Below, one piece after another: positions 28,988-61,138 of a stretch of DNA of 64,000 nt. Both the position numbers and the translations under genes were made by a program. Origin of the DNA: Trichoplax adhaerens. Its lineage: Eukaryota; Animalia; Placozoa. Position 1 is the stretch's first letter. The number at the start of each line of letters is the position of its first letter. The notes under the pieces were generated by a model. The model was not told the DNA's origin, did not search any database, and was given only the letters and a program-made list of their open reading frames with translations. Location of the stretch: contig NW_002060956.1 in NCBI RefSeq assembly GCF_000150275.1, forward strand, positions 1,796,280 to 1,860,279, in the 5' to 3' direction.

Positions 28988-29088
28988 TATCTCGCATTAA
29001 TCGTCTGTAAATCTGTTGTAAGTAATATTATATTGCAAATTCAATTAGTACATATCTAAGTATAAAAGATAATTCGTAGCTAAGAGGT

Positions 29089-29719
29089 TGTCACAAAACA
29101 GCTTTGCAACAAGATAACGCAATATACGATCAATAAGTCAATTCCTTGAACCACGTATCAAGGAACGATATCTGCACTATCACAACCACTTTTGCTCTAC
29201 TAGCAGACTACACAAAGACTTAAACGCCTCGTATTTTACGTTAAACACTAAGTTGGAGAATTCTTCTTTATTTCACGATACGCTGCATTTATATACTATT
29301 CCTCAATAGTTCATGAGTCATAGTTAATACAATTAACATTAGAATCATTTACTGAATTAGATATTAATTTTAGCTACTGCTCCCTTAATGCAGACAACAG
29401 TATTTACGAGCATAGACATGTAATGACTAATACAGAATAGTCAGATTACGATATGTCCTATCACGGAACATTTCCATGATAATTTACAGTCTACCATAAG
29501 TAAATTACAATCACAATGATTCGAACTGTAAGCAGATGATTTGCATTCCCTATTATAGCTATTAATTTCAGTATGTGTATAAGTGTTACTGTGATAAAAA
29601 GTCAGTGCTATATTAAAACACAGTATATCCAAATTAGAAGTTAACTAAATAAGGATAGTCTAATAGAATTATCCTAACATAGATATTTCTACTGTAATAC
29701 AGTATATAACACTGTAACA
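29089..29719. mobile_element. Solo LTR-like element, copy 1 (631 bp)
   Basis: Begins TGTCACA and ends TGTAACA (TG...CA with a short inverted repeat). Perfect 5-bp flanking duplication GAGGT (29084-29088 and 29720-29724). About 96-97% identical to 59615-60245 by manual count. Confidence 0.85.
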
Positions 29720-31659
29720 GAGGTACTTTCCAATAAATAGGAAAACGCTTATTAATTATAAACCTACTGGACAGGATAATCACATTTATATGGCTGATTA
29801 CATTTGTAGCAGTTGTGATTGAATTATTATCTCTTGAAATGATATCGCTGTTACATGAAGCACGTAAGGCATATCAATTATAATTATGAAGCCTTATTTC
29901 CCCGACAGTACCTGCTAAAACGATGGAGGTGAGAAATTCTTTTAAACTAATACTGCATAAGTTATTTCATTAATTAAGCAGTATTAGGTTAGAAAGATGT
30001 AAAATATCGTACATCATCTATAACGATAAAGTGTAGTAATAAGAAAATATGATGCAATTACATTGAACGTATAGAAATTTTAATAATATAATAAATAATT
30101 TATCAAGCATGATGCAATGTCAAAACAGAAGATTGAAATAAGATTAATCTTTAGAGTTAAAGCGTTCTTTCGGGTGTTACTTGTCTACATATTTTATGGC
30201 AGAATGATAGTTATATATTTTTTAACAGGATAAATCAAATGTAATATAACCTAGTAAATTTAAAAAATCATCAGCCACACGTAGTTAGTGTTACAATAAA
30301 AGGAATACATACAAAACCCCTCGAGGAAAATATCATATTCACTAAAATGTCTCAAAACGTGGACATTCGACTAACGTCCAATCCCAAGTTGAATAATTCT
30401 ACAATAAAATCATCTGCTATTTAATTCTCTTCCAATACAGTTTACTACGACAGATCACTTAGCCAGCTAATTTAAGTGTACAACAAGGAAAAATATACTC
30501 GATTCAAGCAAAGCGTTCTCAACCGTTGGATAAGAATGAATGAAATTTTAATTAATGGTTTGCTGCGTAAAAAATTTTTCTACCAAGAAATGAACAGCTT
30601 CACGTATAAATAGGCGTACACCGAATTATGCTATTGTACAGTATAGCAAAGAGATTTTACTATTCGCTGCTGATTATATTATTGAACAAATGGTAAAATT
30701 AATTGAAACAATTTAACAGACTAATACGATTCATTGATGTGTAGTACCTTTTAGATGACGGCAGTTTAGGAAAAATAAAAGAAAGGACAAACTTTAATCC
30801 AAGAGATTAACTAGTACAGCTGCTTTCGTAAGAGCAATAATAGCAAAATAGATCGGAAATAGACGCATGGAAAATTTACAGTAGTGTGTTATCACAACTG
30901 CGGATACATCGATCGACGTTCCTTCTTGATCAATATTATTGTGATATAATGTAGTGTTACATCATTTTTGCACTTGCAAAATACGCCCTTGGATATCTCA
31001 GTGGATCATTGTTCCAACTGACAGAGGACAATTTTAACAGTTTCATTTTTTATCACAAGAAGCAATTTAAAATGTGATACAGGACGACGAAAGCTTAACC
31101 ATACCAGATTTATGGGTAAGAGTTAATTTAAATTGTGTCTCGAAACAATAGTAGGAAATGAGGTAATGCTATACATTATTGATTTCATCTTTATATTGCT
31201 TTACGAATATTGCACATATAAAGTTATTGAATCTATCATGGATGTATCTGCTAATCCAATCTCTCATTTCTCAATTACGCGTATAACGACTTTATTACGA
31301 ACAAGTTGGAAAAATCGTCAAGACAATCCTCAGATTAAGTTAATAGCTGCTATATTCAATTACATTAAACTGAGCAAGGTCCACTATATTGACGTTTCAG
31401 CACGTAAATTTTTACGTATACCGGCAAAGCCCAAAATGTTACGAGTAGAACATGGTGTTAAATTTGAAATGCAAAGATACTATACTATTAAGCGTAAAAA
31501 TCCAGTATTTGCACGACATGCTGGGACAATTGTAAGAATTCGAGCTTATGCATTGTAGCACCTAGTAAAATTGAAATCATGCTGTCATTAAATCAATCAA
31601 AACGAAATAGCTATTGATTTTGCACTTGATGGATTATCTTTCTATCCACAGTAGTCATC

Positions 31660-32700
31660 AATCTGACAGCTTATTTTACAGGACTTTGATAAATGATGAA
31701 ATCCACTAATTTGAGCTGATTAGTGTACGTATGGCGTATTAACTCAATCAATGCGAATAAAATGATCAACGAATTTGAACTCGATAGACAATTTAGTTAT
31801 CAATAGTACTGTACATTTAACGTTCCTTGTTGACTTTTGATTGCATCGATAATAAATAATAAGATCATGTAATTTTATTGTTCTATATCCCTATATACTG
31901 TGCGTCCAGATTGATAAAAGATGCAGGCAATTAACATTTTAAATTTTTGAACTTTACTGTTTATTTTTCTTATAACTACATTGGTGACAAGTGATGAGAT
32001 GAAATAATTTTGATTCATTTCTATGATTAATGGTTTGAACTCGATAACCAATCTAATTTTTTTGCACCTTTTACCGATTAATTTTCCTGTAACTACAGTG
32101 CTGATGAATGATAAGATCAAATACAATATTAATTCATTTCTATGATTAACGATTTGAATTCGACAGGCTATCTATAAATTAAAACCTTTACAGCTTATTT
32201 TACTTAGCTACATTGGTAACAACTGATGAGATCAAATCAATTTTAATTCACTTTTACGTGTATTCGTAAGAATCCTACTTTGAATCAATAACGACACAAC
32301 TACCGTCGATTTCAGGCTTGATAGACTACAGTACTTATCATGATATATCATCAATACGCGTATTATTAGCGTATTTTTTACTAGGTATTGATTGCATAAG
32401 CGATCAATGTGCAAGAACCACTAATTTTAATAGTGTGCTCCATATCTATTGGACCTTAAAGCAATGCAGATAAAACGGCTCATGAATTTGAACTCGAAAG
32501 ATTACATATTTACGTACGACATTTGATGGAAATTAATAATAGCTGTTTGTCTTGAGCGATCCCATCATATTTGAACTCATAGTCAAGAATGAAACTAGGA
32601 CTAATGATGTTGAATTTGATCGACAATTTAGCTATACATTCGAGCAGCATTTTTAGTAGACTTTGATTAACGAATTTAAATTTAACGCAGTACTAAAACC
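31660..32700. repeat. Degenerate tandem array, clearest units about 115-117 bp
   Basis: Units start TAACTACA/TAGCTACA at 31973, 32090 and 32205. ATTCATTTCTATGATTAA and (A/G)TTTGAACTCGA motifs recur, the latter also at 31771 and 32485. Confidence 0.65.
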
Positions 32701-32776
32701 CTTAAAATAGATTCGATTTGCAAGATAGATCAAGATATTGCGCAGGTGTCGATGGTAAACGAAAACAATTCGTATG

Positions 32777-32857
32777 GTAGAATCAATACAATCCGAATCA
32801 ACAAAATAAGCTGTCAATTCCTGCCTATTTTGTTGATTCGGATTGTATTGATTCTAC
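32777..32857. repeat. Perfect inverted repeat: 32-bp arms, 17-nt loop
   Basis: GTAGAATCAATACAATCCGAATCAACAAAATA (32777-32808) is the exact reverse complement of 32826-32857. Confidence 0.95.
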
Positions 32858-35237
32858 ATATTTTCATCAGCTACTAGTACCACGTATTTGACTGACTTTT
32901 GAAAAATTTCAATTTTCTAACGCCCTTGGAATCAGGATATAATGTTCATTTTTCTTCCGTCCCGTGTCAATTTTATCACTGTTGTTAGGACTACGTATAG
33001 AGAAATGGAGTTGTAAGCGTCGATAAAATTTGTGTACAATTGGAGGGTTTACCGAACTGAAGAATTCCCCGTAGATTACCTTTTCTACGGCTAACAACTA
33101 CAGAACTGTAGATTCTGATACAACTAGCTAGTTCTGTAATAGGTACTGTATGTTTATTGGACAGCTGGTTGTTTGGATTCGTGTCAATGATAAATGATAT
33201 CAGAATTCCTATCACGTTCTCAAAAGTGAATTCATCATTTCCTATGGTACAGTAGTATGATACAGTATACTAAATGCCATCCAAGTTTTTGACTGAAGTA
33301 CCCGTAGTTGGCCTTTATTATAGTTAGTAACCACAGGATTAGACTATTATCCCGACCTCAAAAGCAAATCCTTCTTTTACTATAATAGTATGATACTAAT
33401 TAATTAGAATGCTATTCAAGCATTTCCACAGTTGCTAAAAACGGAACCGACAAAACAAATGCGAAATCGATAGTCAATGTGGTCGATATTTTGATTCTAC
33501 CTTTCAGTTTCTGCTTCAATATAGGATAGTAACTAATAAATGAGTAGCCATTTTGGATTAACTGACGGTCGACACGACCATCAAATTTATGTTGTTATAA
33601 TTAAAACAGAATACATCGAGCTTCTGTTTGTAACGCTATCATCAAAGGTCTCGATCGGCTGGGAGTCTAAATTTTGTTGAACTGTTATTAATTATATATT
33701 GGAATTATCATTGTATTAAAAGTAGTTAAGGGAAGAGTTTTATTTTTCTACCATGGTCACGACATGAGTAGTCAATTTTACTTGGTTACAAACTATCTAC
33801 TAACCCTCCCAGTTGATGATAGTAAGTAAATGAATCAAGGTTGCTGATGATAGCAGTAGAATAACACCGAGTCAATAATTATTAATTAAAAAAATACATA
33901 CACGTCTATACTATCTATCTACGAGAATAATAGACTAGACAACAAGAAATATTAATCAATTATTCGGCTCGGGATTTCATCAGGGTGGTATGGAAAAATT
34001 CGATGAAAGCTGATAGAGTACAGATGGTCTCTATCCCATCAACTTGTTCAATTCCTTTTAACAATCTACAGTACTCTTCTTTCGTGTGATAGGATAATAT
34101 CATGATTGGACTGGTACGATGTAGGTAATGATGTGGTAATGGCGATAAACTGTCATATCACGTACACTGAGTAACCGATATCCACGGTGCGGGAAAAGTT
34201 GTGGACAAGGTCGTGCGAGAAAAAATACTCGTACTGTAGCATCAGCATGGAAATTAGTCGAGATTAACACGAAGAGAAAGAAGGCATAGGCATGTAATGA
34301 AGGGCAAAAGGATAGACAGATTAATTTGGCAGCAGTAAAGATCTCATCATCCATATTTATTTCCAATTGCTCCATGTCTACCTACAGTAAGTCATACTAC
34401 TGTCTAGTGACTGTATACGGTATGTTGGGAACATGTTTTCTTCTGCCAGCACAGAATGTTACCGTCAAAAGTGACGAGAGAGAGAGAGAGAGTTGACGAC
34501 GGCATATCGTATCTAATTACTACATACAGTAGTACATACAGTAGTCCAAAAGGGTTTCTCAAAGCAGGAATGACTCAAGCAACAATTTTCCCTCACCTTA
34601 CCGAAAATTCTAGTTTTCAAGGTAAGGGCGTTGCATATCAATTGACGATCATGAACGATCAATAATCGCAATGACTATACAGTATACAGTATATCGATTT
34701 CTAATTCATTTCATACATTCCTATCCATACACAATCAATCAAAATAAAACGCCTATCCCAAACGGATAGAATCAAATTATACTACTGAACTTATTGGAGT
34801 CATTCTTACATATCCTGGAATATAGAATATCGCCGTACCGATGAGAGTTGTTGTGAAATTAAATTTCGATTGTCAAGCGACGTAAATTTTTCGCTGATAA
34901 AAAAGCCCAAATTAACCAAAGGTGCTGGAAGACTTGTCGTACGGTATGGCTGCTAATGCAAAGTACTGTACAGTACTGTACAGTCGAGAAAAGTCCTTCA
35001 TCAGTGTTGACTACGGAAAATCGATGACGTAAATAAAACAATAGACCTTCGGTGTACAGTACCGTAGGTATAGTACTAGTTCAAGTGTTGATATAAAGAA
35101 TAGTACTGTATTATGGTTAACATACATTACAGTCGATAGGCCACTCTTGCAGGGGCGTGGCTACCGTGTAGTGTTATTCAATGGTGAAGAAATGGACTTT
35201 CAATTTGGCTAGAATTCCATGCAGATACATCTGTACA

Positions 35238-35337
35238 ACCTTGAGCCATTGGCTCTTGATATGTTGATTCCTTTTTATCGCAGTATTACCTTGAGCCATT
35301 GGCTCTTGATAGGCTGATTCCATTTGATCGCAGTATT
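35238..35337. repeat. 2 x 50-bp tandem duplication, each copy carrying a GAGCCA-T-TGGCTC palindrome and a CCAAT box (minus strand)
   Basis: ACCTTGAGCCATTGGCTCTTGATA...ATCGCAGTATT starts at 35238 and again at 35288. Confidence 0.9.
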
Positions 35338-35392
35338 GAATAATTCTATTTCTACTTTCTAATACAAACTATCAGGCGCTTTTCGATGTATG

Positions 35393-35540
35393 GTCGCCCT
35401 GGGCAACCATTTTCTACAAGTCACGTGGTAATACCGGTCGACAAGTCCTTGGAGTACACTCAGACACTGTACAGTACCCATCGACCCAGAGAGCTCAAAG
35501 GAAAACAACCTGGTCACAGCTAGCCTGGAGTCTATAAATC
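35393..35540 (+). promoter_or_regulatory. BLOC1S6 proximal promoter: RFX X-box, CLEAR/M-box-like E-box, TATA-like box
   Basis: GTCGCC-CTG-GGCAAC (35393-35407) fits GTNRCC-N0-3-RGYAAC. GTCACGTGG at 35420-35428 and TATAAAT at 35534-35540. All lie within 250 bp of the ATG. Confidence 0.55.
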
Positions 35541-35642
35541 ACCATACTGAATCAGTTGTATTCAGTACTTAAAACTGACACAAAACCGATAGCAGTCTTT
35601 AGCACTCTGGCACTGATCGAGCGGCAGCAAATGCATTTACCG

Positions 35643-37348
35643 ATGGAAGAAGGAAGAGAGAAAAGCTCGACGCAACAGGATTCTGAAATAACTGCCCAAG
35701 ATGAGAGGATCGATCCAAATGCGACCATCCTAAGCCATTCTGTTTTATCTCTACTTGTACCAAAGGTTGAATATGTTCAGGGCAGCGTCAAAGAAATTAC
35801 GTAAGTGAAATGATGTCATTTTGCTTGGAAAGTGATCGATGAGTCACAGCGTGTTGGTTAGCTACTGCAAACTTTTGTCACTTTTTGCTAGATGCTGATT
35901 TTCATTTGTAGAGTATCATTGCCACTTTTATGACTTTCAACCTTCAATAGTATTGTAACAAATATTACCCTAGCCTTTGACAGTAGAAATTCAATCTATA
36001 CCACATGGATAAACTCTCCAAATGGCTGAAATGACAGAGGACCATTTTACCAGCAGTTTCAATTGTACCACAACTTAACGAGCAAAAGTACCCCCTTTAC
36101 TTGCTCTTACTTTATCAAGTACTCTACTCGTAGAAGTGTTATGAGGATTGATTGATTGTAATTTCCCGCTCAAAACATTCTTGAAATTAGATGGTTGTGC
36201 TTGAATGGACCTTCCATTCTTGCGATCGCTTTAAAGTTACCCGTTAGACACAACATAAACTTGTCATAAATAATAGTGCCCCGCTACAAGCACTACCAGC
36301 TACTTGAATGAATGTAAGGTCTCTTCCTCATTATGGTACGTGCTAGGGGACTCGTCAACGAACAGAATAGGCATAACTAAGTTGAATTCAGTATCTAAAC
36401 AACATTCTAGCGGACTATTATAATAAGAAAACGAATCTTGCCTAATAGAAATCATCCTATCGACATTGTTTGCCCTTAATCCTCAATTTGCTAGTCTTGT
36501 AGTGAATACGGACTGTAAGTTGCAGCGCAAGTGATCATGGGAAGGAAATGTCATGACACAAATGAATTGATCCCTAAAATCAACATTTCTACTTTATAAG
36601 ATACCCCTGACATACTGTGCAACTAGATATTATTAACGTTTACCATGTGGCTTTGCTAAGAAATCAACAAAAGTGTTGTATTCATTTTTCAGTAAAACAC
36701 AGAACGTCCTTGCCAAATCAGTCGAGCAAGAAAATGAAAAGTTTCGGCAAATTGGCTACATTCATGACTTATCAAATACTGTAAGATATGCAATCATCTC
36801 AAATTGCAATGTTGTTATCATTGATGGATTAATGGAAGGCATTTAGAGACTCGATAATACTGTTTTAATGATACTCATTTTGATACTTTGAGTGAGCTTT
36901 AGATGATTTGTTCATTTTCATGTGATATATTATCGATATCATTGGTATGTTAATGTCATTATAATTATAGTTTATTAGGTGCAGACGTTGCAGATTTAAG
37001 CTAGTCAATATCAGGAGAGAAATGTTGAATCTGAGCGATAGAATGAATAAATTAAAGGTAGGCAATCGTCGTGATTTATCACGCCAATCGTTTGTGCTCT
37101 TGATAATATAATGATACACTTACTACAATTCATTATCGATTACTCTTTGCTGTTACGTTTGCGGGTACTTATTCGTATGTTGCTTGTTTGTGCTGCTGTC
37201 ACTTGCAACCATGCAGAAACGTGCTGCAAGACTAAAGTCTATCCGCGAAAAGCAGCAGTTAAAGCAAGCCCAAGAAGAAGCCGAAAGACAAGCCTATCAA
37301 GCTAGCTTACTTGCTAAACCCGCCAAGCATTTAACAAATCAAAACTGA
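35643..37348 (+). CDS. BLOC1S6: BLOC-1 subunit 6 (pallidin); 4 exons, about 154 aa
   Basis: Exons 35643-35800, 36693-36780, 36971-37057 and 37217-37348. The spliced EITKTQNVLAKSVEQENEKF...KLVNIRREMLNLSDRMNKLKKRAARL...LLAKPAK matches recalled pallidin ELTQNQVVLLDTLEQEISKF...KLVNIRKEML...KLKKRALKL...LTARPAK. An alternative in-frame ATG lies at 35631. Confidence 0.92.
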
Positions 37349-37744
37349 AAAGATGATAAAAAGACTAAGACTAAGTTCATGCAATGAAATACTTGATTTT
37401 TTTCACGTATATAAGATAGCCATCACTGTACATTGTTTTTATATCCATGATATGAAGGATAACCGTACTTCGATTAATTATTAGCTATTGGTTATCGTTT
37501 TCGGATCTAGATAATTTTCAACAGTATCCTATCACGATATCATGGATTAGGATACTACGTTTAATAATTGCCAAACCATCTAAAAATTGATTGCAAATAT
37601 ACAGTGTTTTGCGAGGAATTGATAGTGTGGTTGTGCAATGGTGAAACAGCATGGTCATAAAAATAGATGAATACTCTTAGAAGCACATTCATTTTGGTGC
37701 TATGCAGTATCATAGTGTTATCTGAAAAACTTTATTTCAAATTT

Positions 37745-40700
37745 TTATATTATTTTCATGCCAACAATGGCCAGATTTCTAGGTGAAATGTATTCCTCAA
37801 ACAAAGGTATGATTCCACAATCTATGTTAAGCTCATTAAGGTACAAACAGCGGTCGATTGTTACGATACTTTCTAATAACGGCTGAAATAACACTTGTAA
37901 TGCCTATGGGATAATATAAATTGAAACAAACTAGAATATCGTAATCACTAAAATGTATGTAGAATTTTCTTTTGAAGAGAAAATCTTACCGTTATGGCTT
38001 CTGCATATGGTATTACCAGCTCGTGCTCCTTGTACTTTTGCATGCATGTAGCGAAGCATTTCTCATAATTTTCATCAGTGACTGCTATGGCAGTAAATTA
38101 TTTATTAATGCTGACATCAGTCTATCATATCCAGCACAACATTGTAGTTTGCAATCAACACAGATTTTAATATCATTAAAATTAGAGTGCTTTCTAAGTG
38201 ATTATGCGTGCTAAAGTAGCATCAGGTAACCACTAATTTAAGTGACTCATTGAGCTAACACAAAAATTACGGTACTAAAGCAAGGTGACAGTTAGGGGTT
38301 GCAGAGGTTCGGTTACAGTAACAGATATGCTTAGAGGTAACAACGTATACAGTATGCGAGGATATAGAATCTTAATCATTCTATTTTACCTTGGATGCGG
38401 TTAAGATAGATTTTAGTGTAATCTTCGAAGGTCATCGCTGCAGATACTTTAATACGAACACGACCTTGATTTGTTTCACGAATCTCTTTAAAATCATTTA
38501 AAGGCAAAGTATACTTTACACGCAAAAACTTTATGAGTACGGATATAAACGATAGAAAGATTGGCTCAGCTACCTCTAGGCAGTGCTTCATTTACAATTG
38601 AACGATATGCAACATTTTTTGTATGGAGTACATGCTGAGCTAGGCTCATTTTTTCCCATCTATAAAGTTAAGTTCGCCATATACAACCTGATTAAACACT
38701 ATCTGCTTTATCATTCGACCTGGATTGATATACAACACCGTATTGTAATACATAATGTAAAAAGCAAATTCTAACCTCTTTCTGGTCTCTTGTGCAGCTA
38801 AGCGCATTGCGTAAATCCCCATTTGCCAGTCGTGGTACTTTTTGCTCATCTGTGACAATATATCCTGTATAACACAACACAATGAACTTCAGCAATGTTA
38901 CTTTCAATTTAAGACTATTATTGATTATACGGGTATAGTATATGTCAATACTACGTAGAAGAGGCTTTGGTTGTGTTGAACTTAAAAAGTTATTACGATA
39001 CACCTACATTTAGATGAAAGCTCATCGGAAAATTTTTGAAGCAGCTATTTGCCTTAGTATCTGAAAGTCCAGTGCATGGTTTTGATGAGATTATGAAATA
39101 ATTATTTAATATTGAAACAAAATTACCTTGCCGCTCAGGCAGCGGGGTAGTCATGCCGTGATAACAGCAACCTACACAGACAAGAAGAGCAGAAAATGGG
39201 CAGTGTTCTCCAACGTAGTGCAAGATGTTAGGAGTTAAATCATTACAGCAATGTAAACCAGCGAAACAAATTGGTATAGTTAAATTTTCCTGATTTTGAT
39301 TCGGGAAACTAGCTACAGCTTGACAGTTGCCGTCTCTGGCGCTTTTCTTATTCACACCAATTGGATAATACAATCCTTTGCTGTTGTTAGTATGGTTAAT
39401 CGATAAATCTTCAACTAATCGTGTTAATTCTTGATAACTTTGAGTATCACCGCTTATTCTTAACGTAATACTGTTTATATCTTGTGGTCTAGACCCATCC
39501 CAAGTTGATAATGAGGCATTCCTTTTAGAAATTACTTTAACATTACGAGTAATAGCACTTTCGGATCTTTGCGAATTTGAATCAAGTCCAACAATTTTCA
39601 TTTTGTAAAGGCTATTAAGAACCTGGCCCAGATAACCCTAAAGATGAAGATACGTATCTTAATCTAATATGATTCATAGAGTAGCTGAACAGTAGGAGTA
39701 TTTCGTTTAATCTGCTTAATTTCAGCATTTCCTAACAAAAACTGATGTAGTATGACCTGTATTGAAAGCTACCATACAAAAACTAAATGAATTAAGCTGA
39801 ATTACCAGACCGGAACCAATGTCGACAACAGTCTCACAGCCATAGTTTTCGCACATTTTCGCAATGAAGGACGCCATTGATTCAACCTATTTGTGTATGT
39901 TGCGGGAATATATTACAATGAAGAGGACAACATGAGGATCAGGCAGAATCATTATTTTAAGTATAAAGTTATGTAATCGGCTAAAAGGATAATGTAAGAG
40001 TTGTCTATTAAAATCGATTAACCTCATGACGCTTTTTTGGGATCATTCCTAAGCCAATATCATCTTGAATCTCGGCCTTATCAATATTCTGATTTGGCTC
40101 TCGAGGCATAGCTAACGCAGCTACTTGAGTAATAAAATTCTGTAAAGATTTGGGCCAGAATTCCTAAGGATATATGTACAGATTGTGATTACTAAGAAAG
40201 GGTATTAGGTGCAGAAACAGTAGTAATATAGCAGATAAGGCTACTGGGTATTGTATTTTGCAGCATAATAAGCTCACTATTCTCATTCGAGCAAATCGCT
40301 TGAGTAGAATAACATCATTTCTATAGTACATGGATTAAGCAGCAGATGATAGTCTATAAAAAACCTGAAAGTAATCTTTCACTAGATTATAGACTTTGGT
40401 TTACATTATGCTCTGACATTACCTTTACTCTTCCTTGAGGAATATACTTTAGATCTTCATAAGAAAGCTGTAATAGAGGTTGCTGCCACTAAAGATGCAA
40501 AATATTTTGATGACATATTAAAAATTTCGAATTCATTCATTAAGCAGAGCAATGTTTAAATTCAAATCAGCAGTACTAGGAAGGTAATTGTACTTGTTAT
40601 CATGATAATTAATTTAATCGTCTACATTTAATACTGTATTGATAGGAAAATCCATCTCTACTAATTACAATATACTGTACTACAGTTGTTGTAGAGCAAA

Positions 40701-41078: not shown

Positions 41079-41184
41079 TCATTACTCATGTATGACCTTT
41101 GTCAGAGACCACATCGCACACCCTTCAATAATCACATGATTATAGAAAGTCTTGAGTTGTTCAACTGGTGCAAATAAAGATCTA

Positions 41185-47278: not shown

Positions 47279-48379
47279 TTGCTTTATTATCAAAAGGTTC
47301 AGGCAGAGTTTTTTCATTTTCTTGCTTTGATCACTTGCTTTTATTATTTTAGATTTAAAGCTCCTAGAACGTTAATCAATTTGTTTCAACATCCTGCTAT
47401 CATTATAGCATGGATTATCGGTCTATGTGGAATGATAGCTAACGTTACGCTTCTAATTGCTATTTGGAAAAGATATCAGGCAACCTTTAAAAAGGGCTGG
47501 TTCAAAAAGGAGTTAAAGACAGTGGAGTTATATATCATTAATTTAGTATTTGTTGATATACTAGGTGCAACCTACCTGCTTATCATTGCTGTTGCAAATA
47601 CTGTTTATGACGTTCATGATACCCGTGGAAAGTTACCATCTTCAAATTTTAGCAATATATTCACAAATAATAGCAAGCCTGTATCTATCGTTAATAGATG
47701 GGGAATCCATCCCCTCTGCAACATAGCCAGATTTCTTTACTTTTTATCACTTACTATGTCTGTTTTAATTACACTATTAATCGCTATAGAGCGCTGGTTA
47801 GTTGTCGTTGGATCTTTAAAAACTTCAGAAGTTAACAGAACAAGAGCGAGAGTAATATTAATACTCTGTTGGTTATTTTGTATCGGGAAGGCTCTTTATC
47901 CATTTATACGATCTATAGTGGTCTTAGATCGTGTTAAGAATCAAACACGCAGCAATCTAATGTTATGCCTACTTGCAGATCCTGATATTTCTAATGTACG
48001 TTATTTCAACATCATTAACTTAAATATCTTTTATATTTCTTACGTTTTCTGCATTTTAATATACATGTTATTGCTGATTAAAATGCATCAAGCCAGAAAG
48101 ATTACTCTATATAACAGTAAGAAACCGCAAGTTATTTTAGCAAAAACTATGGCCCTTATCACCGTTTGTAATTTATTCTCCAATCTTCCCATTACAATCA
48201 TTATTATATGCAGAATGAGAGGATTAACTATTGTTTTTAACCCAAATTTTACACATGCTTCTGCGATTTGTATCGTACTGATGTTTGTCAGTACAATTAG
48301 TAATCCAATTATCTACATTAACAGAAATCATCAAACTACGAATCGTAGTCAACGCCGCGTACGCATGAGAAAATTATAA
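47279..48379 (+). CDS. Rhodopsin-class (class A) GPCR, LGR/GRL101-like 7TM domain
   Basis: 366-aa ORF with 7 hydrophobic segments and motifs NLVFVDILGATYL, W..HPLC, IAIERW and SNPIIY. The TTG start is doubtful: a pyrimidine tract and ag at 47351-47352 suggest a splice acceptor or a different start. Confidence 0.88.
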   Translation: MLYYQKVQAEFFHFLALITCFYYFRFKAPRTLINLFQHPAIIIAWIIGLCGMIANVTLLIAIWKRYQATFKKGWFKKELKTVELYIINLVFVDILGATYLLIIAVANTVYDVHDTRGKLPSSNFSNIFTNNSKPVSIVNRWGIHPLCNIARFLYFLSLTMSVLITLLIAIERWLVVVGSLKTSEVNRTRARVILILCWLFCIGKALYPFIRSIVVLDRVKNQTRSNLMLCLLADPDISNVRYFNIINLNIFYISYVFCILIYMLLLIKMHQARKITLYNSKKPQVILAKTMALITVCNLFSNLPITIIIICRMRGLTIVFNPNFTHASAICIVLMFVSTISNPIIYINRNHQTTNRSQRRVRMRKL

Positions 48380-51300: not shown

Positions 51301-52808
51301 TTAAATGGATTATTTTGGATAGGCAGTAAAATTTATGAAGTTTACAAGCAGTAACACAGAGTAGTTAAGAATTTAACATCACATTGTAAGCAATATATAA
51401 CATACAAAAATTTAACATTCTGTTTCAAAAAATTGATCGTGAATTATCATCAATCATTTAGGTCATAGCAAATTAATTTACATTAATATTATATTTTTTC
51501 CTTACAAGAGTAGTTAATTTTTATCTATTTTAATGAAGTGATTGATCTTTACAGTGTTCAAGTATAAAATAATTATAACGGTAATAGACTATTATAAATT
51601 GCATCTAAAGATTGTATTTAGCGTTACTACCGTTGTATAGCATATATATGACCACAAAGACCAATACGTGTGTAATAAGCAGTTTTACTACATACAGTAT
51701 GCAATGCATAACGACCGAAACTAATTTGTTTACAAAGAATGTAGATTCTACCAATTTTAATTATTTATTTCCTCCGCAATGATTAGTTAAAGCAGATGTT
51801 ACAGAAATCAGAGATGTTGTGCACTTGGAATAAAGAAATTGAATTTACGGTTGGTATGAATAGTTGACCATTACAAAATAAGAATATGCATATATGTGCT
51901 ATTATTGCAAAGGAGTAATGGCCATTTACGGATGCATGTCATGGAGACATATGTTCAGCTTTCAAAAATTTTATCAATATACCAAAATATTCAATTTTAG
52001 CTGTAACAATTCGAAATAAGGATTTCTAATCTTTACGAGAATTTGAAAACTTTTAGCTCCTTTCATAAACATTCCAATTCCCTTTAATAAGAATTTATAA
52101 AAAAATAAACAGTGAAAGAGGGCGACAGCCAACTCAATCCAGGTTCTTAATAAATCGTCTATGCAAAATCGTAGAATGCTTCCAGTTTAAAATCTAAAAT
52201 ATGGAATAGGAGCAGACAATGTCCTCGCAAACTATTTTGATTTGAATCGGTTTCAAGTTTAATAAATGATTGATCCATTTTCGGCTGAAATCTCGATCAA
52301 ATATCATGATAATTTATAATAAAGCACAGACATATAAAATCAATTACTACTTAGTAAGATTCATGATTGGGATAGAAAAAGGAAGTTGACTTCCTGCCTG
52401 ATCGATCAAATGTATGAGGGCGATTAGTATCTAATATCATATTCCATTTCTTCACCCCAAATAACATATGGCATTCAGTAGTGAACATTGAGAACATAAT
52501 TAGCTAATTAAGTGAACTATTATTAACCAAATTAATATAATATTACGCATGTGTAAAAGCACGATGATAACTACCACCGACAATATAAATATTCCGCTTG
52601 TGGAAACAAATTTCAGTTCGCGTGTAAATAATTCAAGCCCGAAAACGATAGTTAGTTCCATCGAAAATCGTGATAAATCTTATTGTCGAACCAAAGCCTT
52701 TAATTAATATAAAAAATCGTACCCTACATACGAAAATTTGAAAGTTTCTACCGAAGCTATATCGTAATTATTGCGTAAACCATAGTTATTATTCTCTTCA
52801 ATTTAAAC

Positions 52809-53885
52809 ATGTTCTATTCACTTTATCAAGGAAATAACACGGCAAGAGCGACGGCGTGGATTATCGGTATGTTAGGCTTAATTGGAAACGGTTGCATAAT
52901 TATTTATTCTCGAAAAAAGAATTTATTGAAAGTCAGTAATAAAGGACTAAGTACTCGTTCTAGACAAGCGACCCGTAAATCATCAGTCATATGCAATTAT
53001 CTAATTTTTAATTTAGCCATTGCCGATTTGTTAGGCGATCTTTATTTAACTATAATTGTATCAGCCGATACATATTATGGAATTAATTATCCAGTAATTT
53101 ATCAGACTATCAATCCTGTTAATGAAACAAATATTTGGATCTTTCATCCATTCTGTCATATTGGTAGATTTTTTTACTTTACATCTACTATTTTGTCTAT
53201 ACTGATTACATTAGTTATTGCCGTTGATCGATTTGTGAGCGTCATTTTTCCCATTAGCAAATTAAAACTAAATCTTCAAAGATGTCGAATTATTATGCTA
53301 ATTTGCTGGATCTTAGCAAGTAGTTTCGGTCTATATCCCACTATTAGAGGATTTATCAACGTAAATTTATTTGCCAAGATGTTCTGGTTCCCTATTAATG
53401 CATGTCTTTATGAAGATACTGATGAACAGCTTGTTACGGACTATATCAACGCAAAATATGCAATTTTTTACACTTGTAGTTGTTTAGTATGTCTTTGCTA
53501 TATTTTTATTTTGATTCACGTAAAAACTAAAAGTAAATCTAGTAGTGCCACTCAATCTGAAGCTATTCAACGTCATATCCTTCTCATCATGATCGCCGTT
53601 ACCATTTCTAATATTGGCAGCCTATTACCGTCAACGGTCATGTTTGAACTCTATAGATTAAATACTCCATTTACTCCTTTATATGATTATATGCTAACCG
53701 TAGGTACCATGATAACATTCGTTAATACCGCAGTTAATCCAATAATTTACATGGTTATGTCACCTTCTTTGACCAGGAAACTCTTCAAATGTTGTAAGGT
53801 TAGATTTTATATACGCAACAGAGTTAACGATGCTTCGCATTGTATAGATGAGGACAAGCCAGTGCATAATCCTCAACAATCGTAA
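52809..53885 (+). CDS. Rhodopsin-class GPCR, LGR/GRL101-like 7TM domain, single coding exon
   Basis: 358-aa ATG ORF with GLIGN, NLAIADLLG.LYL.IIVSADTYY, W.FHPFC, IAVDRF.SVIFP, NACL and NTAVNPIIY. Confidence 0.93.
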   Translation: MFYSLYQGNNTARATAWIIGMLGLIGNGCIIIYSRKKNLLKVSNKGLSTRSRQATRKSSVICNYLIFNLAIADLLGDLYLTIIVSADTYYGINYPVIYQTINPVNETNIWIFHPFCHIGRFFYFTSTILSILITLVIAVDRFVSVIFPISKLKLNLQRCRIIMLICWILASSFGLYPTIRGFINVNLFAKMFWFPINACLYEDTDEQLVTDYINAKYAIFYTCSCLVCLCYIFILIHVKTKSKSSSATQSEAIQRHILLIMIAVTISNIGSLLPSTVMFELYRLNTPFTPLYDYMLTVGTMITFVNTAVNPIIYMVMSPSLTRKLFKCCKVRFYIRNRVNDASHCIDEDKPVHNPQQS

Positions 53886-56800
53886 TCAACTGATCTAAGT
53901 AGTGACTTTAGGTATTGTACTATTATTTATTACTACTCATTAAGATTCCTGTATACTTGATATTAAAATATGCTGTGGTGTACAGCTTAGTCTACTATAT
54001 TTAATTCCTGTTGGTTATCATTAGAAGGTCTCCTCTGTCTCATTTAAAGGGTTAACGATTAAATATATGACGTATTTGAAATCAATTCAAATGCACCAAG
54101 CACTTATCATTACGTTAATAATATTCTAGCTTCCTTACATTTAATACTAATATATCTTCATCTAAAACTACTAGGACTTGCAATCATTCAAAGTTTCGCT
54201 AGTTTATGATACCTTAAATGGTGACAAAACATATATAATGCAAAATTGTAGAGTACTAGTTATAATAAAGATTACTTTTATTTGAACCGGACTTGATCTA
54301 ATGCGACTGATGTTAAATAAATCAATATGTAACTGCTTGAAACTATAATAAACTCTAACTTATAAGAAACTTAATATTCACGCCACTGTGTTGTTACAGT
54401 TTATAATTTTACTGTGGATGGGTTTGTATTTTTTTCAACGTAATCTCGAGGCCTTTCCTCAGTAGCAACTATAGACTTAAGCAGTTAGTGTATTATTTCT
54501 AACCTTTGCATTTGTATCATTTTGTAGTAAACTGACGTAGAAAAGACATTAGAGCTAATTAGAGAAGTTATGTAGGTGTGAAAGTTTGTGTCAGTTCGTG
54601 AACTTTCTCTCCAGCTATTCACTATATGCGTATCAGATATTCTATTGGCACAGTCTAACCAACATATTAATTAAATATTAGGCAGGTATTAATGCGTACT
54701 TTATTGTTAAGAAAAGTATTAGACTAATTAAAGTGAAGAGTAATCGGTAACTTTAGATTAATTAAATGATGTAATATTAGCCTTGTAACTCTACCTCAAC
54801 ATGCTAAAAATAATCACTCGTTTTAAAGCTAATGGAATTAAAAAGTGAAATCGATATCGTAAGCGAGATTTAATTATCGTATATCAATTTAATAGAAGCT
54901 ACTTTTAAAAAATATTTAACTGCTCACGTTAAACAGCACTGAATACCGTAAGTTATGTCGACTCGTAATTTCAGTACTTACACGTGGTGATAAGATAGCT
55001 TGCGATCAGTTTTTATGCTTACTATAAATTTACGTCAAATACAATGTCATAGTGAAAAATTTAATATACTATGTCAAGAGTCAATCTCTATTACTCAGAA
55101 TACAGATAAAGCAATAATTGCTTTATCTTTGCTTGAAGGGTATAATTATTAGATGTAAAAGACGTTCTCGTTCTGTTGTTTGAATATTATTTTCTATTAT
55201 AATTAATTAGCGAATACAAGTTACTTATTATTCTCAAGTTAAAAGTAATTAATAGAATAGGATTGTGAAGTTAAATTTAAATAACAATCGTTCGAACTTC
55301 AGGCTTCGAGTATATTTTGGGAATTAAGTACGGATACTTTATTTCAGAGACGGGAAAGACCATAGAAATTATTAGCACTGCTTACTGAACATATAGAATA
55401 AGTATTTAAATTTTATGCTATAAATTCTGACATAGAGAATAATGAAATAGTGAAAGAAGCAAAGATAAAAATTTTATTGAAAGACTGTATACATAAATAG
55501 GAAAATTTGATCTTCTTTTTTAAGATCTGCTGTAGTAGGAAGTTTTCCTAGTCTTTCAGAGCTTTTTGTATTATTACATAGTATCTTGACGATAGAGAAT
55601 CGGTAACAAAATCTGATATTATAGAATTACTTGTGTGATTTACATTATTATTACAGTTAGTAGAACAGCTTTTGTGACAATGACGGAAAGAATAGATATG
55701 CTTTTTACAAACTCTGCCTATTCCAATATTCGTTTCCTCAATAAACAAAGTATTACGAGTGAGTAAACAGTAACATGTAAGGGCAAAATCTCTCTTTGTA
55801 TTGATAGGCTACTGTAATGCTGTGAGTTTAGTACTTGAGTTAAATTCTTAATTAAGTATAGAATTATTAATATGCACTACCGTAGGCTATAGCACTTGCG
55901 TAGTTTAATGCGATTAGTTGCTCGTGCCCCGGCAAAATATGATAATTTAATGCCCGTGATTAACGTGTGGAAGCGTGATAATGCTACTATCATTACTAAA
56001 TAGGTCATGCGCTAGGATTTATAAGCGTATGCAACAGTAGATCAGGAGTTCTTCTTGTTCATAGTTTGTTGTAAATACAGTTACAATTGGCTTTTATTGT
56101 AATAAAGCTTAATTTGAGTTTTAAATCCAGTTAAACTGATTTATTGTACTTAAATTAAAAATGTAGTTCATGACTTTGTAAGTATCGATGCTTACAAATG
56201 TTGATGTCGCATTTTTCTCATAAATTCACCTCGTATTATTGCTTGATCTGATCAATTTACAGTCTAAATTCTCAGTACTATTGCAGCAATACACATAATT
56301 TCATTTCGATGTACAATATATCCGTCAAAATTTTTGATAAATCATAAATTTAAAGAAAATTGATTAATAAGTACCTTTATTTAATAAATACTGAAACCAA
56401 CTGCTGTTTTGTATATGTACACGTATATACAATGATGTAAAAAGTTTCTGTTGAGAGAGTAATACAGTAAGGGCTGGTAAATTTATTTACTTAATGCTAG
56501 TATAATCAACATATAATTAATAGAGTATATTCCCTCTCATCTGTACTAATATTGTTCTAGTAACTATACGTTCACTTTCAGTATTTTCATTTTGGATTGA
56601 AAATAGTAAGAGAAGCAAAAATTAAAGTTTTCTTGAAAAACTGTGCGTATAGATATAAAATTTGATCTTAATCTGATAAGGAATACTGTACTACACTGTC
56701 TTTAGGTGATGGATTGGAGCTCTGGATTTCTTGCCCAAAATCCAAACTACCATTACATAAAATAAATATTAGTCGCCATATTATTGCAGATAAGTTTATC

Positions 56801-59614
56801 TAAGTCAATCTACAAAATAAAATTTTCGAAAAATTTTTAGAATTTGGCAAGAAAATATTCTGAAACTCCGAATGGCATAAATAAATAAGAGAATTGCTCA
56901 GTTTACATGGTCATGCTGGTGAAAAAACGCCACTAGTCTCAGATATTATTAATTTTACACGGTTGCTAGATCATTAGCGAATTAAAATTACGAAAAATAA
57001 ACCCATCACACTTCATAAGACTACTCATATGAAAATGTATAATATGCAGTGATTTACGAATTGTTTAAAGGTTGTTCAGTCTATGCTTTCAAAATATTCC
57101 AAACAAATTGGCGCTATTTTGTTTATTCAACACTGTTATTGACAGCAGCTTTCCGTAACTAGGTATATTTAATTATGGCAGTCTTCATCATTCATCACCT
57201 CAATGAGAGAACAGCAAATATTATAAACTTTATGTAACCTATCACTAAAGAAAATCTTAAACGATTGCTATTGCCACTAACTATTGCTCTGTCAAGGATC
57301 ATTAAAATAAAGAAATATTATCTTCAGTAATTTATAGGCCTAGAGATAAAGACATTTTTGCTATAGATAATTACTTAGCAGAATCGACTTTTAATTAAAC
57401 GGCCGGATTCAAATTTGTCTTTGTAGTTCCATTGCTGGATAAAAGAAAATGGTTCAGTACAAACGAATTGCATTGTATGTATATTCCTCCTACATTACTC
57501 TTAGATATTCTTCATTATAACCTTTTTTATTAACTCTGACTACTTAATTTGATATCTATTTAAATCTGCCTGGTTTTCGCAAATGTATTTTTATTTCTTT
57601 TTGAAGATTTTTTTGCAAATTTTTCGTTTAAATGAATTGAATATTTACTCTACCGTATTCAATTCATTAAATAATTAATTAATATATAATAATGAATTTA
57701 AGTTTAACTGAAATAAAGATTTCATAATGTAGAGCCAACTGCGTATAAATGGTATCTCCAGTATTATCAATACTGTATAGCAATTACAGATATATTTATG
57801 ATGCGTTTAAATAGCATTGGATATAATTACTGCTGTACAAAGGCACCAGATTTTATAAGGTCTCATTATAATATAATTAATCGTATTAATAGTACAGAAA
57901 ATTAATCAAATAGCATTTGGAATTCATCTGTTAAGCAATTTTGCGAAATTGTTGCATCAACACTTATTTGTAATGGTGCGCGTATTGATATATTAGCCAT
58001 TGCTATTAGCCAATTTTTAGTCGTTTTTTATGAGTATGCCTTATTAAATCAAAATTAATCTCACAAACTGCTGCATTAATTTACACACATATATTTGCTC
58101 GAAAGAGCATGTAGTTTTGGTCCATACACAATTATGAAAGAGATTGTCCACAAAGAGATATTTTGTTAAGTTGTTTTGTTTTGTATTATTAAATCTCTTT
58201 ATGAAAAATAGATTGTTATCAGTTCGAATGAAAATTAAAAAATCTCTTTAAGTAGGGTACGCTGTTTCTAAAAATTTATTGCATTTTTATTTTCAGCTAC
58301 CAAAAACTAAAAGCAGGTTGATTAGTGTTAATAATACGCAATGGCAGGCTACTCAATATAATTTTTTGGGCAAAAATTGTAGTCCTTATTTCTAATGCCA
58401 CTAGGATATTGCCATCAATGGTTGTGTGCTAGTAAAGTGAACCATTTACCTTTCGACATAGATATACGCTAAATATTACCTGTAAAAGAACATCTAAATT
58501 CTAATCAATACAATACCATAGTTTATGTCATCATTCTTGAGCAAGTCTTTAAACGTCGTTATATAGTCTAATTTACGATAGAGATATTAAGTCTTGGTTA
58601 ATACTACCAGGAAAATCAGTATATAATAATTATTTACAGCGTACGATACTATACTAACCATTGCTAGGATACTAATAAGGAATTTGTTTCAAGTTTACTC
58701 ATTGTAGAAATGGATAGATTGATGAAGTAGATCTGAGATACAGAGACTGTTCGTTTAGTATACTTTATCATCAATATATAGCAAGCAAGAAATGCTGACA
58801 ACAAGTGACACACGATGCTTGCTTGGTATATAGAATACCAAAATTCTTCAATGTCGATGTAGGAACTTATTTGGGTAGGATACTCTTAAAGAATTCCACC
58901 ACAGGACTCTTATTACCTGTTATAACTATAAAAAATTAAAAAATAACGTATTAATTGCCGATGTCTACTTCCCACAGAATAGAACTGAATCGATAGAGCG
59001 CTTCGATCGTTGTGATTATATCTCAGCAAAGCATCAAATTCAAAAATTACGTAAATTACTAACAGCCTCCAATTCCTACCTATAGGAGCTGGAATTTTCG
59101 ATTTTAAAATGGCCAGTTATAATTCTTCTCCTCGCAGCTGTAAAAAAATTGTTAATGTCGCGTTGCAGCTGAGAATCTAAGTTCATGGATTCAATCGACG
59201 ATCTACCATCAAGAAAACAATAACTATTCCTGCTCTATCTACAATTATTATCCAACATTTAACGAAATTAATTATAATTTTAATTTAGAATATACTTTTA
59301 CATATCCGGCATTATATTACCACAAATGGCAACCTATTGTTTTATACAACAAAACTGTATTTATCTCAAAAATTTATTGAATTTTCCAGTTGCTATTGTG
59401 GCAAATACTTAAAATTCCGATAACGATATTTCTATACTGAATTAGATATTCTAACACCAATGTACACAACTATATAGGTATATTAATAGATTAGGACATA
59501 GTAGGGACTTTGAAAGCTCACGTACACATTTCACCTTTTAACATAAGCAAGTGCATATAATGTATTCTAACTTTAACTAGAGATTATCAAGTCTAGCTTT
59601 TCGGAATATACCTC

Positions 59615-60245
59615 TGTCACAAAACAGCTTTGCAACAAGATAACGCAATATACGATCAATAAGTCAATTCCTTGAACCACGTATCAAGGAACGATATCTG
59701 CACTATCACGAACACTTTTGCTCTACTAGCAGACTACACAAAGACTTAGACGCCTCGTATTTTACGTTAAATACTAAGTTGGAGAAATTCACTTTATTTC
59801 ACGATATACTGCATTTATATACTACTCCTCAATAGTTCATGAGTCATAGTTAATACAATTAACATTAGAATCATTTACTGAATTAGATATTAATTTTAGC
59901 TACTGCTCCCTTAATGCAGACAACAGTATTTACGAACATAGACATGCGATGACTAATACAGAATAGTCAGATTACGATATGTCCTATCACGGAACATTTC
60001 CATGATAATTTACAGTCTACCATAAGTAAATTACAATCGCAATGATTCGAACTGTAAGCAGATGATTTGCATTCCCTATCATAACTATTAATTTCAGTAT
60101 GTGTATAAGTGTTACTGTCATAAAAAGTCAGTGCTATATTACAACACAGTATATCCAAATTAGAAGTTAACTAAATAAGGATAGGGTAATAGAATTATCC
60201 TAACATAGATATTTCTACTGTAATACAGTATATAACACTGTAACA
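59615..60245. mobile_element. Solo LTR-like element, copy 2 (631 bp), same orientation as copy 1
   Basis: TGTCACA...TGTAACA termini. Flanks ACCTC (59610-59614) and ACGTC (60246-60250) form a 5-bp duplication with one mismatch. Near-identical to 29089-29719. Confidence 0.85.
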
Positions 60246-61138
60246 ACGTCACTAACAATTGATACTATTTAGGCAAATAAGACGATTGGCTAATTCGACG
60301 TTCAATGATACAATACTTTCATTAACAATGCTTTCGAGTAATTCGATATATAAGCTGCCATGATTTATAACGTTTTTTTATAACAGTAAAAGTAAGCTTC
60401 TGTTTAAAATAGAGACAATCAGATGTACCGGATTTCTTCTTGATTAGGTAATAAGGTAATATATTTATGTTTTCATTTAAAAATATTTTCTTACGACTAA
60501 TTATGCCTTTTTATTGTTTCTATTACTCTTTCACTTGGCATTCATTAGTAATTTAGATAGGATATACGTTCAAGGTTCAAGCCGAATTCCTGCAAAAACT
60601 GAGCTATAAAAATTTTAAAATTCACGTGATTTATCATTCAAATGACAAGTTCAATGATTGCTATTGTGGCAATCTCAATTTATTAACTAGAAGACGAAAT
60701 TTTAATTAATCATTCTTTTGGTCAAGATTACTGCTGGAACAGGATTTGGCTAAGTCATTGACCGATCAATGACTCAAGAAAAATAAGATTATTACAGCAA
60801 ACTATGCTTTGTTAGCGAAATCAATTTATTGAATTTATCGTTACAATTAATCGCTATCCTATTCTTATTTTGGCTATTCAAAGATAGGTTTTGTTAAGAA
60901 TTTTACGTTAGTATTTATTATTACCTTCTATTAGCGTAAACTGTACTTTATCAATTATTTATCTGTAGATATTAATAAAATATATAGTTGATACCGTATA
61001 ACATATATAAGTACGGATGCAAATAAGTTAGTAGGAAATACATGCAAGTCATAGAGCGTAACATAAACTTGAGCAACTGAGACCTCCATATTTTATCGTA
61101 AATTTTACTAGAAAAATTTTATCATCAGTTTTTCAGCT

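Follow-up and report, generated by a model that had tools for sequence, protein, structure and literature searches.

Two 631-bp repeats in a Trichoplax adhaerens contig are very probably solo LTRs of a high-copy Ty3/gypsy-type family with a weak palindromic target preference

Two repeat copies and their target-site duplications

The window, that is the whole stretch of 64,000 nucleotides of Trichoplax adhaerens DNA that was analysed (contig NW_002060956.1), contains two direct copies of a 631-bp repeat spaced by 30.5 kb. Copy 1 is located at positions 29089..29719 and copy 2 at positions 59615..60245. Both are oriented on the minus strand, the U3 start of copy 1 being at 29719 and its U5 end at 29089. 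The start of a TMEM272-like gene is located 102 bp past copy 1. As the sequence-only reading had described, the two copies have the same length and identical termini with TG..CA ends, beginning with TGTCACA and finishing with TGTAACA. They share 96.7% identity (3.3% divergence), and the repeat itself is far above chance level. The terminal inverted repeat is imperfect and limited to 7 bp. A cut-and-paste DNA transposon or MITE making a 5-bp duplication was therefore rejected, since inverted repeats longer than about 10 bp are missing.

Each copy carries its own 5-bp target-site duplication, in agreement with the earlier description. Copy 1 is flanked by GAGGT at positions 29084..29088 and 29720..29724. 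Copy 2 is flanked by ACCTC on the left (59610..59614) and by ACGTC on the right (60246..60250), with one mismatch (4/5). The orthologous site of copy 2 is occupied in Trichoplax sp. H2 (L085:16835-17465), with 9 differences over 631 bp, an identical left duplication and the same mismatch in the right one. For copy 1, the corresponding site in H2 (GCA_003344405.1) is expected about 13.7 kb ahead of position 1594536 of NOWV01000002.1, and protein searches found no H2 gene model close enough to reach it. No empty site for either window copy was found in the same assembly.

Because the two copies have a common orientation, lie 30.5 kb apart and are bordered by related target words, they might have arisen from a segmental or inverted duplication of a single insertion. 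However, the similarity breaks off precisely at the terminal TG and CA of the repeat, and the flanks have no common sequence past about 12 bp in either orientation. Moreover, the target duplications of the two copies are separate, the copies differ by 3.3%, and either one has relatives elsewhere in the genome that resemble it no less than the other window copy does. The flank comparison thus already refutes this origin, to which we attach next to no probability.

The repeat belongs to a large family. Searches with the LTR ends gave 498 genome-wide matches to one end and 376 to the other, as compared to 0 for the controls. This corresponds to about 500 copies and about 0.3 Mb of DNA. Copy 1 is 97-98% identical to dozens of them. 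Among 58 unique full-length copies, 52 have their own 5-bp duplication (49 perfect, 3 with one mismatch), five have none and one adjoins a gap. The sampled copies have the same TGTCACA...TGTAACA ends as the window copies, except L002, which starts with TATCACA, and L048, which ends with TATCACA; TGTCACA occurs as a minority form of the end. Allelic empty sites with a single target copy were found for two members of the family. For the copy on contig C788, the flanks map to C1394, where they overlap at 195665-195669 by the 5 duplicated bases and no more. Likewise, the flanks of the copy on contig C1053 overlap by 5 duplicated bases at C1399:1206377-1206381. Both insertions are polymorphic, as they are missing from the other haplotype, yet they are already solo. 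The check for empty sites was therefore positive for two other family members and negative for copies 1 and 2, of which copy 2 is also filled in Trichoplax sp. H2.

Target sites of the family

The sequence-only reading had seen in the two target sites the mark of a sequence-specific LTR element, whose integrase would recognise about GAGGTAYWTTCC and insert in either orientation. The underlying match was confirmed in the window. GAGGT is the reverse complement of ACCTC, and the right flank of copy 1, GAGGTACTTTCC, agrees at 10 of 12 positions with the reverse complement of the left flank of copy 2, GAGGTATATTCC. Two further observations favour the proposal. The site of a third copy (L059), GTAGCTTAGAGGTC, is close to that of copy 1, GTAGCTAAGAGGT, and the 4-mer GAGG/CCTC is present at 5 of 51 sites as compared to 1.2 expected (nominal p 0.005). 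However, this excess loses its significance once about 136 4-mers are taken into account, and the copies that prompted the proposal themselves provide two of the five sites. No extended flank homology was detected between copies 1 and 2, whose similarity ends by about 12 bp, or between copy 1 and L059.

The proposal was examined on 51 sites with a duplication, a sample of the roughly 500 copies that is biased to well-preserved ones. The duplications are diverse, with 48 different words at the 51 sites. Genome-wide, GAGGT precedes one LTR copy and ACCTC precedes three, that is 4 of about 500 copies. The same 5-bp word was found in 6 of 2550 oriented pair comparisons, as compared to 3.8 +/- 1.8 in shuffles. 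Flank matches of 10/12 or better were slightly commoner than in shuffles (5 of 2550 oriented pairs versus 1.8 +/- 1.3), and the four pairs other than copies 1 and 2 involve unrelated words. The target-site match thus does not rise above the level of coincidence. The GAGGT/ACCTC match between copies 1 and 2 is a coincidence, and the sequence-specific reading is largely refuted for this family; we regard it as highly improbable. With its failure, the two sites have nothing new to say on integrase targeting.

A target logo built from the 51 sites showed another pattern, with no common GAGGT motif. T is present at position -3 in 41 sites (p 1e-10) and A at position +7 in 42 sites (p 5e-11). Conversely, T is found at position 0 in only 4 sites and A at position +4 in only 8. 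Thus, the target preference of the family's integrase is no more than the usual weak one, with two-fold (palindromic) symmetry. Targeting of tRNA genes as by Ty3 was also considered and rejected, since a search of 1-1.5 kb around the 58 sampled loci revealed no tRNA gene; the window contains none either.

LTR signals and internal regions

Sequence motifs typical of an LTR were found within the repeat. On the minus strand of copy 1, a TATATAA box is located at 29289..29295 (LTR position 425 in the functional orientation), followed 23 bp downstream by an AATAAA signal at 29267..29272. In copy 2, the corresponding minus-strand motifs are at 59815..59821 and 59793..59798. The TATATAA box is present in 55 of the 58 sampled copies, the AATAAA signal in 56, and the pair with its 23-bp spacing in 54. 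This spacing would imply a short R region. A hairpin is predicted from sequence and fold in U5 of copy 1 (29142..29165, minus strand); its arms, TTCCTTGA and TCAAGGAA, enclose a loop of 8 nt, and 53 of the 58 copies retain the two arms unchanged. The region from 28900 to 29900 was also searched for a hammerhead ribozyme, as would be expected of a retrozyme, and gave no Rfam match at E values up to 1.

Only in the minus orientation are the two signals placed as expected of the promoter and poly(A) signals of an LTR. The same orientation was obtained from one locus of the family, L077 on contig C913. There, a reverse transcriptase fragment is followed by a purine run at positions 863-886, which directly abuts the LTR start, TGTGACAGTG, at 887. 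From this junction between polypurine tract and LTR, together with the TATA and poly(A) signals, the functional orientation of both window copies is the minus strand, the reverse of the left-to-right orientation initially assumed.

The L077 fragment matches the RVT_1 profile (E 2.7e-18) and is decayed, with stop codons. Its best relative among solved structures is the Ty3 reverse transcriptase 4OL8 (E 3.6e-18). In this ranking, 4OL8 and the Ty3 Gag-Pol structure 7Q5B are ahead of caulimovirus, foamy virus and HIV. The internal remnant consists of the reverse transcriptase piece and a short motif, presumably of the type that closes Ty3/gypsy RNase H domains, and then ends. On a second contig (C844), internal sequence of the L077 type at 2057-2797 adjoins a perfect young LTR end (2026-2056), with the same junction as judged by coordinates. 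Overall, the internal region was found in 2-3 contigs only, decayed and without integrase. A relative on contig C1162, with 75% nucleotide identity in the reverse transcriptase, encodes a zinc knuckle, a protease and an H2C2 plus rve integrase. Genome-wide, profile searches matched 11 rve integrases and 13 RVT_1 reverse transcriptases, and only one of these loci, that on C913, bears an LTR of the family.

No gag/pol-like coding sequence was detected anywhere in the window by tblastn with 82 retroelement ORFs, and the same search against all LTR-bearing loci found no retroelement coding sequence adjoining an LTR. No TGG-type primer site adjoins copy 1 or copy 2 either. The sequence-only reading was therefore correct in noting that primer site and gag/pol are both missing beside the two copies. 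Directly after the LTR of the family itself, no primer-binding site was found. A search with the LTR end gave 23 matches, of which only three share downstream sequence. These three come from a sibling LTR family with the last 17 nucleotides in common, whose LTR is followed by an 18-nucleotide site starting with TGGTGG that may match the 3' end of a leucine tRNA.

Five close same-strand LTR pairs, with internal spans of 2.7-9.3 kb, were considered as candidate full elements, that is as paired copies enclosing a primer site, gag, pol and a polypurine tract. None of the five encloses such an internal region. The spans share no sequence with one another, the DNA between the LTRs is unrelated, and most of these LTRs have their own duplications. 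The close pairs are therefore clusters of separate copies.

Origin and mobility of the family and comparison with known systems

The own duplications of copies 1 and 2, the family of about 500 copies, the empty sites of other members and the junction of polypurine tract and reverse transcriptase with the LTR all support the earlier view of the two repeats as solo LTRs of independent insertions. The two copies thus very probably represent solo LTRs from a Ty3/gypsy-type LTR retrotransposon of high copy number that integrated separately, their GAGGT/ACCTC match being coincidental. Reverse-transcribed DNA of the element, with LTRs probably laid out as U3/R/U5, would have been integrated once for each copy. 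A retroviral-type integrase would have cut the target with a 5-bp stagger, giving the 5-bp duplication. This enzyme prefers T three bases before the duplication and A three bases after it, and avoids T at the first duplicated base and A at the last. The internal region would then have been lost by recombination between the two LTRs.

Alternatively, the 631-bp unit might itself be mobile, as a non-autonomous unit with LTR-like ends inserted by an integrase, either a Ginger-like cut-and-paste derivative or an LTR-only product. Such a unit would account for the single state of nearly all sampled copies, each with its own duplication, and for the very few internal regions set beside only 11 integrase and 13 reverse transcriptase matches in the genome. 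It would also suit the two insertions that are polymorphic yet already solo, and the close similarity of many copies, since 70 of 1653 copy pairs differ by less than 0.5% and some pairs are identical. However, the terminal inverted repeat does not go beyond 7 bp, two contigs have a polypurine tract and a reverse transcriptase remnant right at the LTR start, and the conserved promoter and poly(A) signals are arranged as in an LTR. In addition, we know of no mechanism for the copying of a lone LTR, and full-length repeats of young age are often missing from draft assemblies or collapsed in them. We consider a mobile lone unit unlikely, and retain the interpretation as solo LTRs of a Ty3/gypsy-type element.

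The two insertions had been called fairly recent, which holds only in part. Each copy differs by 2-3.5% from the family's young core, and copy 2 is not very recent, since it is also present in Trichoplax sp. H2.

The family as a whole bears on the published picture of the genome. With about 0.3 Mb, this one unclassified LTR family exceeds by a factor of more than two the transposon total given for T. adhaerens in 2010 (0.13%, 125 kb; PMC2871265). Identical copies and insertions missing from the other haplotype fit poorly with the published statement that no Trichoplax transposon is active (PMC2871265, PMC6057997). It is conceivable, although we lean somewhat against it, that this family and a wider Trichoplax LTR set (TGT(C/T)AC...TGTGACA ends, 5-bp duplications) have been recently mobile, and that most placozoan 'unclassified interspersed repeats' are gypsy-type solo LTRs spread by integrase-less internal regions mobilised in trans. 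This would mean recent mobility in a genome published as almost without transposons, none of them active.

Among known systems, the family resembles the solo LTRs of Ty3/gypsy elements (Metaviridae), such as yeast sigma. Common features are the TG..CA ends with a short inverted repeat, the 5-bp duplication and an LTR that itself contains promoter and poly(A) signals. As in these elements, solo copies are much more numerous than internal regions, and the rare copies that are not solo have a polypurine tract and Ty3-like reverse transcriptase beside the LTR. In contrast, Ty3 targets tRNA gene start sites, whereas no tRNA gene is near the about 58 copies examined here. The Trichoplax internal regions are also decayed and without integrase, and no complete element was found. 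In the same genome, the gypsy-like elements Ta1-11 ('Tag' clade; Wang et al. 2010, PMC2871265) belong to the same superfamily by reverse transcriptase similarity. Their coding parts are few and fragmented, with stop codons. That survey, based on protein homology, reported 53 gypsy pieces (38.7 kb), did not mention solo LTRs and found no active elements.

Truly site-specific LTR elements, which rely on tethering or sequence targeting, have in common with this family only that they are LTR elements. They show one shared feature or motif at most insertions, whereas the Trichoplax family shows none. The closest parallel for the target logo is provided by retroviral integrases with 5-bp duplications (HIV-1, SIV, EIAV, Rev-A; Serrao et al. 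2015, PMC4422553). The HIV-1 pattern is (-3)TDG(G/V)TWA(C/B)CHA(+7), and in viruses with 5-bp duplications T and A are disfavoured at 0 and +4, respectively (PMC4422553). The Trichoplax sample differs in its size of 51 sites only, in its placozoan host and in coming from a retrotransposon rather than a virus. It shares with this retroviral set T at -3, A at +7, the disfavoured T at 0 and A at +4, and a two-fold symmetry centred on the duplication. A placozoan retrotransposon thus displays the symmetric T(-3)/A(+7) signature that is known for lentiviral integrases.

Two solo LTRs of an abundant family

The window contains two 631-bp units in direct orientation, copy 1 at 29089-29719 and copy 2 at 59615-60245, which are 96.7% identical. 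Their similarity ends precisely at the TGTCACA start and the TGTAACA end. The adjoining 5-bp words are GAGGT and GAGGT for copy 1, and ACCTC (left) and ACGTC (right) for copy 2, and the right flank of copy 1 matches the reverse complement of the left flank of copy 2 at 10 of 12 positions. The sequence-only reading had noted the copies, their TG/CA ends, the 5-bp duplications and this flank match, as well as the lack of adjoining gag/pol, and all were confirmed; indeed, no retroelement coding sequence was found anywhere in the 64-kb window (C1401:1796280-1860279 in an assembly of 105.6 Mb, 1414 contigs and about 31% G+C). The terminal inverted repeat is just 7 bp long, which makes a cut-and-paste element unlikely. 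No Rfam family matched copy 1 and its surroundings (28900-29900, E up to 1), which rules out a ribozyme-bearing retrozyme. Segmental duplication of one insertion, named beforehand as a refuting alternative, was also ruled out, homology stopping at the TG and CA ends and the flanks being unrelated.

Searching the genome with a 31-mer from each LTR end, at most three mismatches being tolerated, gave 498 matches for one end and 376 for the other, and none for control patterns. From the roughly 500 copies, we sampled 58 unique full-length ones with their flanks. The 5-bp duplication was perfect in 49, carried one mismatch in three (including copy 2) and was absent in five, the last copy abutting an assembly gap. 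Thus, 52 of the 58 possess their own duplication, as the solo-LTR reading supposed. Empty counterparts were found on main scaffolds for two copies, both located on small unplaced scaffolds. The flanks of the copy on C788 map to C1394 with 99-100% identity (94% for the 36-bp piece adjoining the LTR) and overlap there by exactly the five duplicated bases; those of the copy on C1053 map likewise to C1399, with 93-98% identity. Therefore, these are genuine insertions that duplicate 5 bp of target, and some of them either differ between haplotypes or arose by very recent duplication. The two small scaffolds are seemingly alternative haplotypes of C1394:195199-197145 and C1399:1205198-1206544, where the insertion is absent. 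Such small scaffolds account for about 40 LTR ends among the first 100 listed.

Copies 1 and 2 diverge by 3.3% from each other; from the remaining sampled copies, copy 1 diverges by about 1.9-2.4% and copy 2 by about 2.7-3.7%. Within the family's young core, differences amount to at most 0.5%, and some pairs are identical. Copy 2 occupies the orthologous site in Trichoplax sp. H2 (GCA_003344405.1, NOWV01000002.1), with 9 differences over 631 bp and the identical ACCTC/ACGTC pair. It is therefore older than the H1/H2 split, and the description of the insertions as fairly recent holds only in part.

The family by itself represents about 0.3 Mb. Wang et al. 2010 put T. adhaerens transposons at 0.13% (125 kb), with 53 gypsy pieces, no active element and no mention of solo LTRs (PMC2871265). 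Kamm et al. 2018 gave 6.6-6.7% of repeats, mostly unclassified, and again judged transposons inactive (PMC6057997). The 631-bp family probably sits among these unclassified repeats. Overall, copies 1 and 2 are two ordinary solo LTRs of an uncharacterised family of known kind.

Internal region and functional orientation

The genome yielded no more than 11 integrase and 13 reverse-transcriptase matches; one of them, on contig C913 (L077), bears an LTR of the 631-bp family. From left to right, this locus, whose internal region spans L077:1-886, consists of a reverse-transcriptase fragment (RVT_1, E = 2.7e-18) broken by stop codons, whose nearest matches of known structure are Ty3 reverse transcriptase and Ty3 Gag-Pol; a short open frame terminated by a candidate for the motif that closes RNase H domains in Ty3/gypsy elements; a non-coding stretch of about 130 bp; and a purine run in direct contact with TGTGACAGTG, the reverse complement of the right-hand LTR end as read left to right in the window. 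On C844, a perfect young LTR end (2026-2056) adjoins the same internal sequence (2057-2797), and a third copy of the internal part lies at C1381:212900-213493. The reverse-transcriptase remnant and the purine run abutting the LTR assign the 631-bp LTR to a Ty3/gypsy-type element. The junctions on C913 and C844 further show that the functional orientation is opposite to the TGTCACA-to-TGTAACA direction first adopted, so that copies 1 and 2 lie on the minus strand.

In the functional orientation, the LTR has a single TATATAA at position 425 and a single AATAAA 23 bp further, both kept in 54 of 58 sampled copies, and a hairpin close to the U5 end. These signals point to a U3/short R/U5 layout.

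The three internal copies share a reverse-transcriptase remnant, a short tail and a polypurine tract, and all end short of an integrase. Therefore, the surviving internal region is a non-autonomous, decayed derivative; the copies have the appearance of a propagated deletion derivative. No gag/pol remnant was found next to any other sampled copy, and the proposed search for paired copies enclosing an internal region yielded no complete two-LTR element among the pairs examined. This great scarcity of internal regions, together with the fact that even polymorphic copies are already solo, leaves a small probability that the 631-bp unit is mobile by itself. Arguing against this are the junctions with a polypurine tract and reverse transcriptase, and the signal layout, which is of LTR type; young full-length repeats also tend to drop out of draft assemblies.

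A TGG was sought at most 6 nt past the LTR U5 end. Three of the 23 matches begin an identical 18-nt sequence, TGGTGG..., presumably the complement of a leucine tRNA 3' end. All three follow a different LTR family of at least 100 candidate copies (for instance L068:2468-2636, that is C1380:382880-383048, L070:1778-1862 and L013:179-259), and no such primer site was found after the LTR of the 631-bp family. The two families have only the last 17 nt (AAAGCTGTTTTGTGACA) in common, a shared terminus suggesting sibling families that use the same or similar integrases. The sibling LTR has its own U5 hairpin, and a few of its copies are followed by C, the 18-nt primer-binding site and a leader.

Neighbouring genes and repeats

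A TMEM272-like gene (exons 28987-28856 and 28359-27943, minus strand) has its start codon 102 bp beyond the end of copy 1, which lies upstream. The gene product is 100% identical to a T. adhaerens NCBI protein, "expressed hypothetical protein". Gene and LTR are on one strand, with the TATA box of copy 1 about 300 bp ahead of the ATG. Copy 1 could be a source or modifier of the promoter. An assembly gap, seen as an N run at about 27280-27610, separates the gene from a coiled-coil tail-anchored ORF (25976-26779).

Three rhodopsin-family receptor ORFs (7tm_1) lie on the plus strand at 47279-48379, 52809-53885 and 61139-62206. Those at 52809 and 61139 are single-exon genes in the H2 gene calls, that at 47279 is not, and a receptor ORF of the window is 99% identical to an H2 protein. 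Copy 2 is intergenic, between the genes at 52809 and 61139; it lies 894 bp upstream of the latter and in divergent orientation. At 3000-19000, three diverged units, each roughly 6.3 kb long, stand in tandem. They lack long ORFs, align in many blocks at 63-86% identity and are probably a paralogous multi-exon gene family.

Elsewhere, LTRs are nested within LTRs (L049:809-2066, that is C1395:1201308-1202565; C1404:2040375-2041641; L044:6958-7726 and 8530-8822), repeatedly at almost one point of the LTR, at about LTR positions 487-498 in the left-to-right direction first adopted. This could reflect an integration hotspot within the LTR or a composite copied afterwards. A repeat of about 560 bp, 88-93% identical between copies, is frequently near 631-bp LTRs (L012:362-922, L030:1005-1495 and 2134-2195, L048:5624-6186, L051:1-531 and 1766-2320); in L030 it is interrupted by one.

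Target-site choice

The sequence-only reading had proposed an integrase preferring a motif like the one that the two target sites have in common. The duplications comprise 48 distinct words at 51 sites. Among the roughly 500 copies, GAGGT precedes the LTR at copy 1 alone and ACCTC at three, copy 2 among them. In 2550 oriented pair comparisons, the same 5-bp word occurred in 6 (3.8 ± 1.8 in shuffles) and a match of at least 10/12 in 5 (1.8 ± 1.3), slightly more than in the shuffles. Of the five, one is copy 1 with copy 2; the other four have unrelated words. GAGG/CCTC was found at 5 of 51 sites as compared to 1.2 expected (nominal p = 0.005), an enrichment that disappears once the roughly 136 4-mers are corrected for, and copies 1 and 2, which prompted the motif, supply two of the five sites. 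No flank similarity was found beyond about 12 bp, nor any tRNA gene near a sampled copy. We estimate that such a match arises by chance in about 0.4% of pairs of copies; across about 500 copies, a number of LTR families and about 1650 windows, approximately one chance match of this kind should turn up. The suggested sequence specificity is coincidental.

The target logo that had been suggested as a check, built from the 51 sites, indeed contains no fixed word, GAGGT/ACCTC or other, and reveals a weak, clearly two-fold symmetric preference. T occupies position -3 at 41 of 51 sites (p = 1e-10) and A position +7 at 42 (p = 5e-11), while T is rare at the first duplicated base (4/51) and A at the last (8/51). 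In the HIV-1 integration consensus, (-3)TDG(G/V)TWA(C/B)CHA(+7), T and A are disfavoured at positions 0 and +4, respectively (PMC4422553). The logo of the 631-bp family is the published pattern of retroviruses with 5-bp duplications (PMC4422553).
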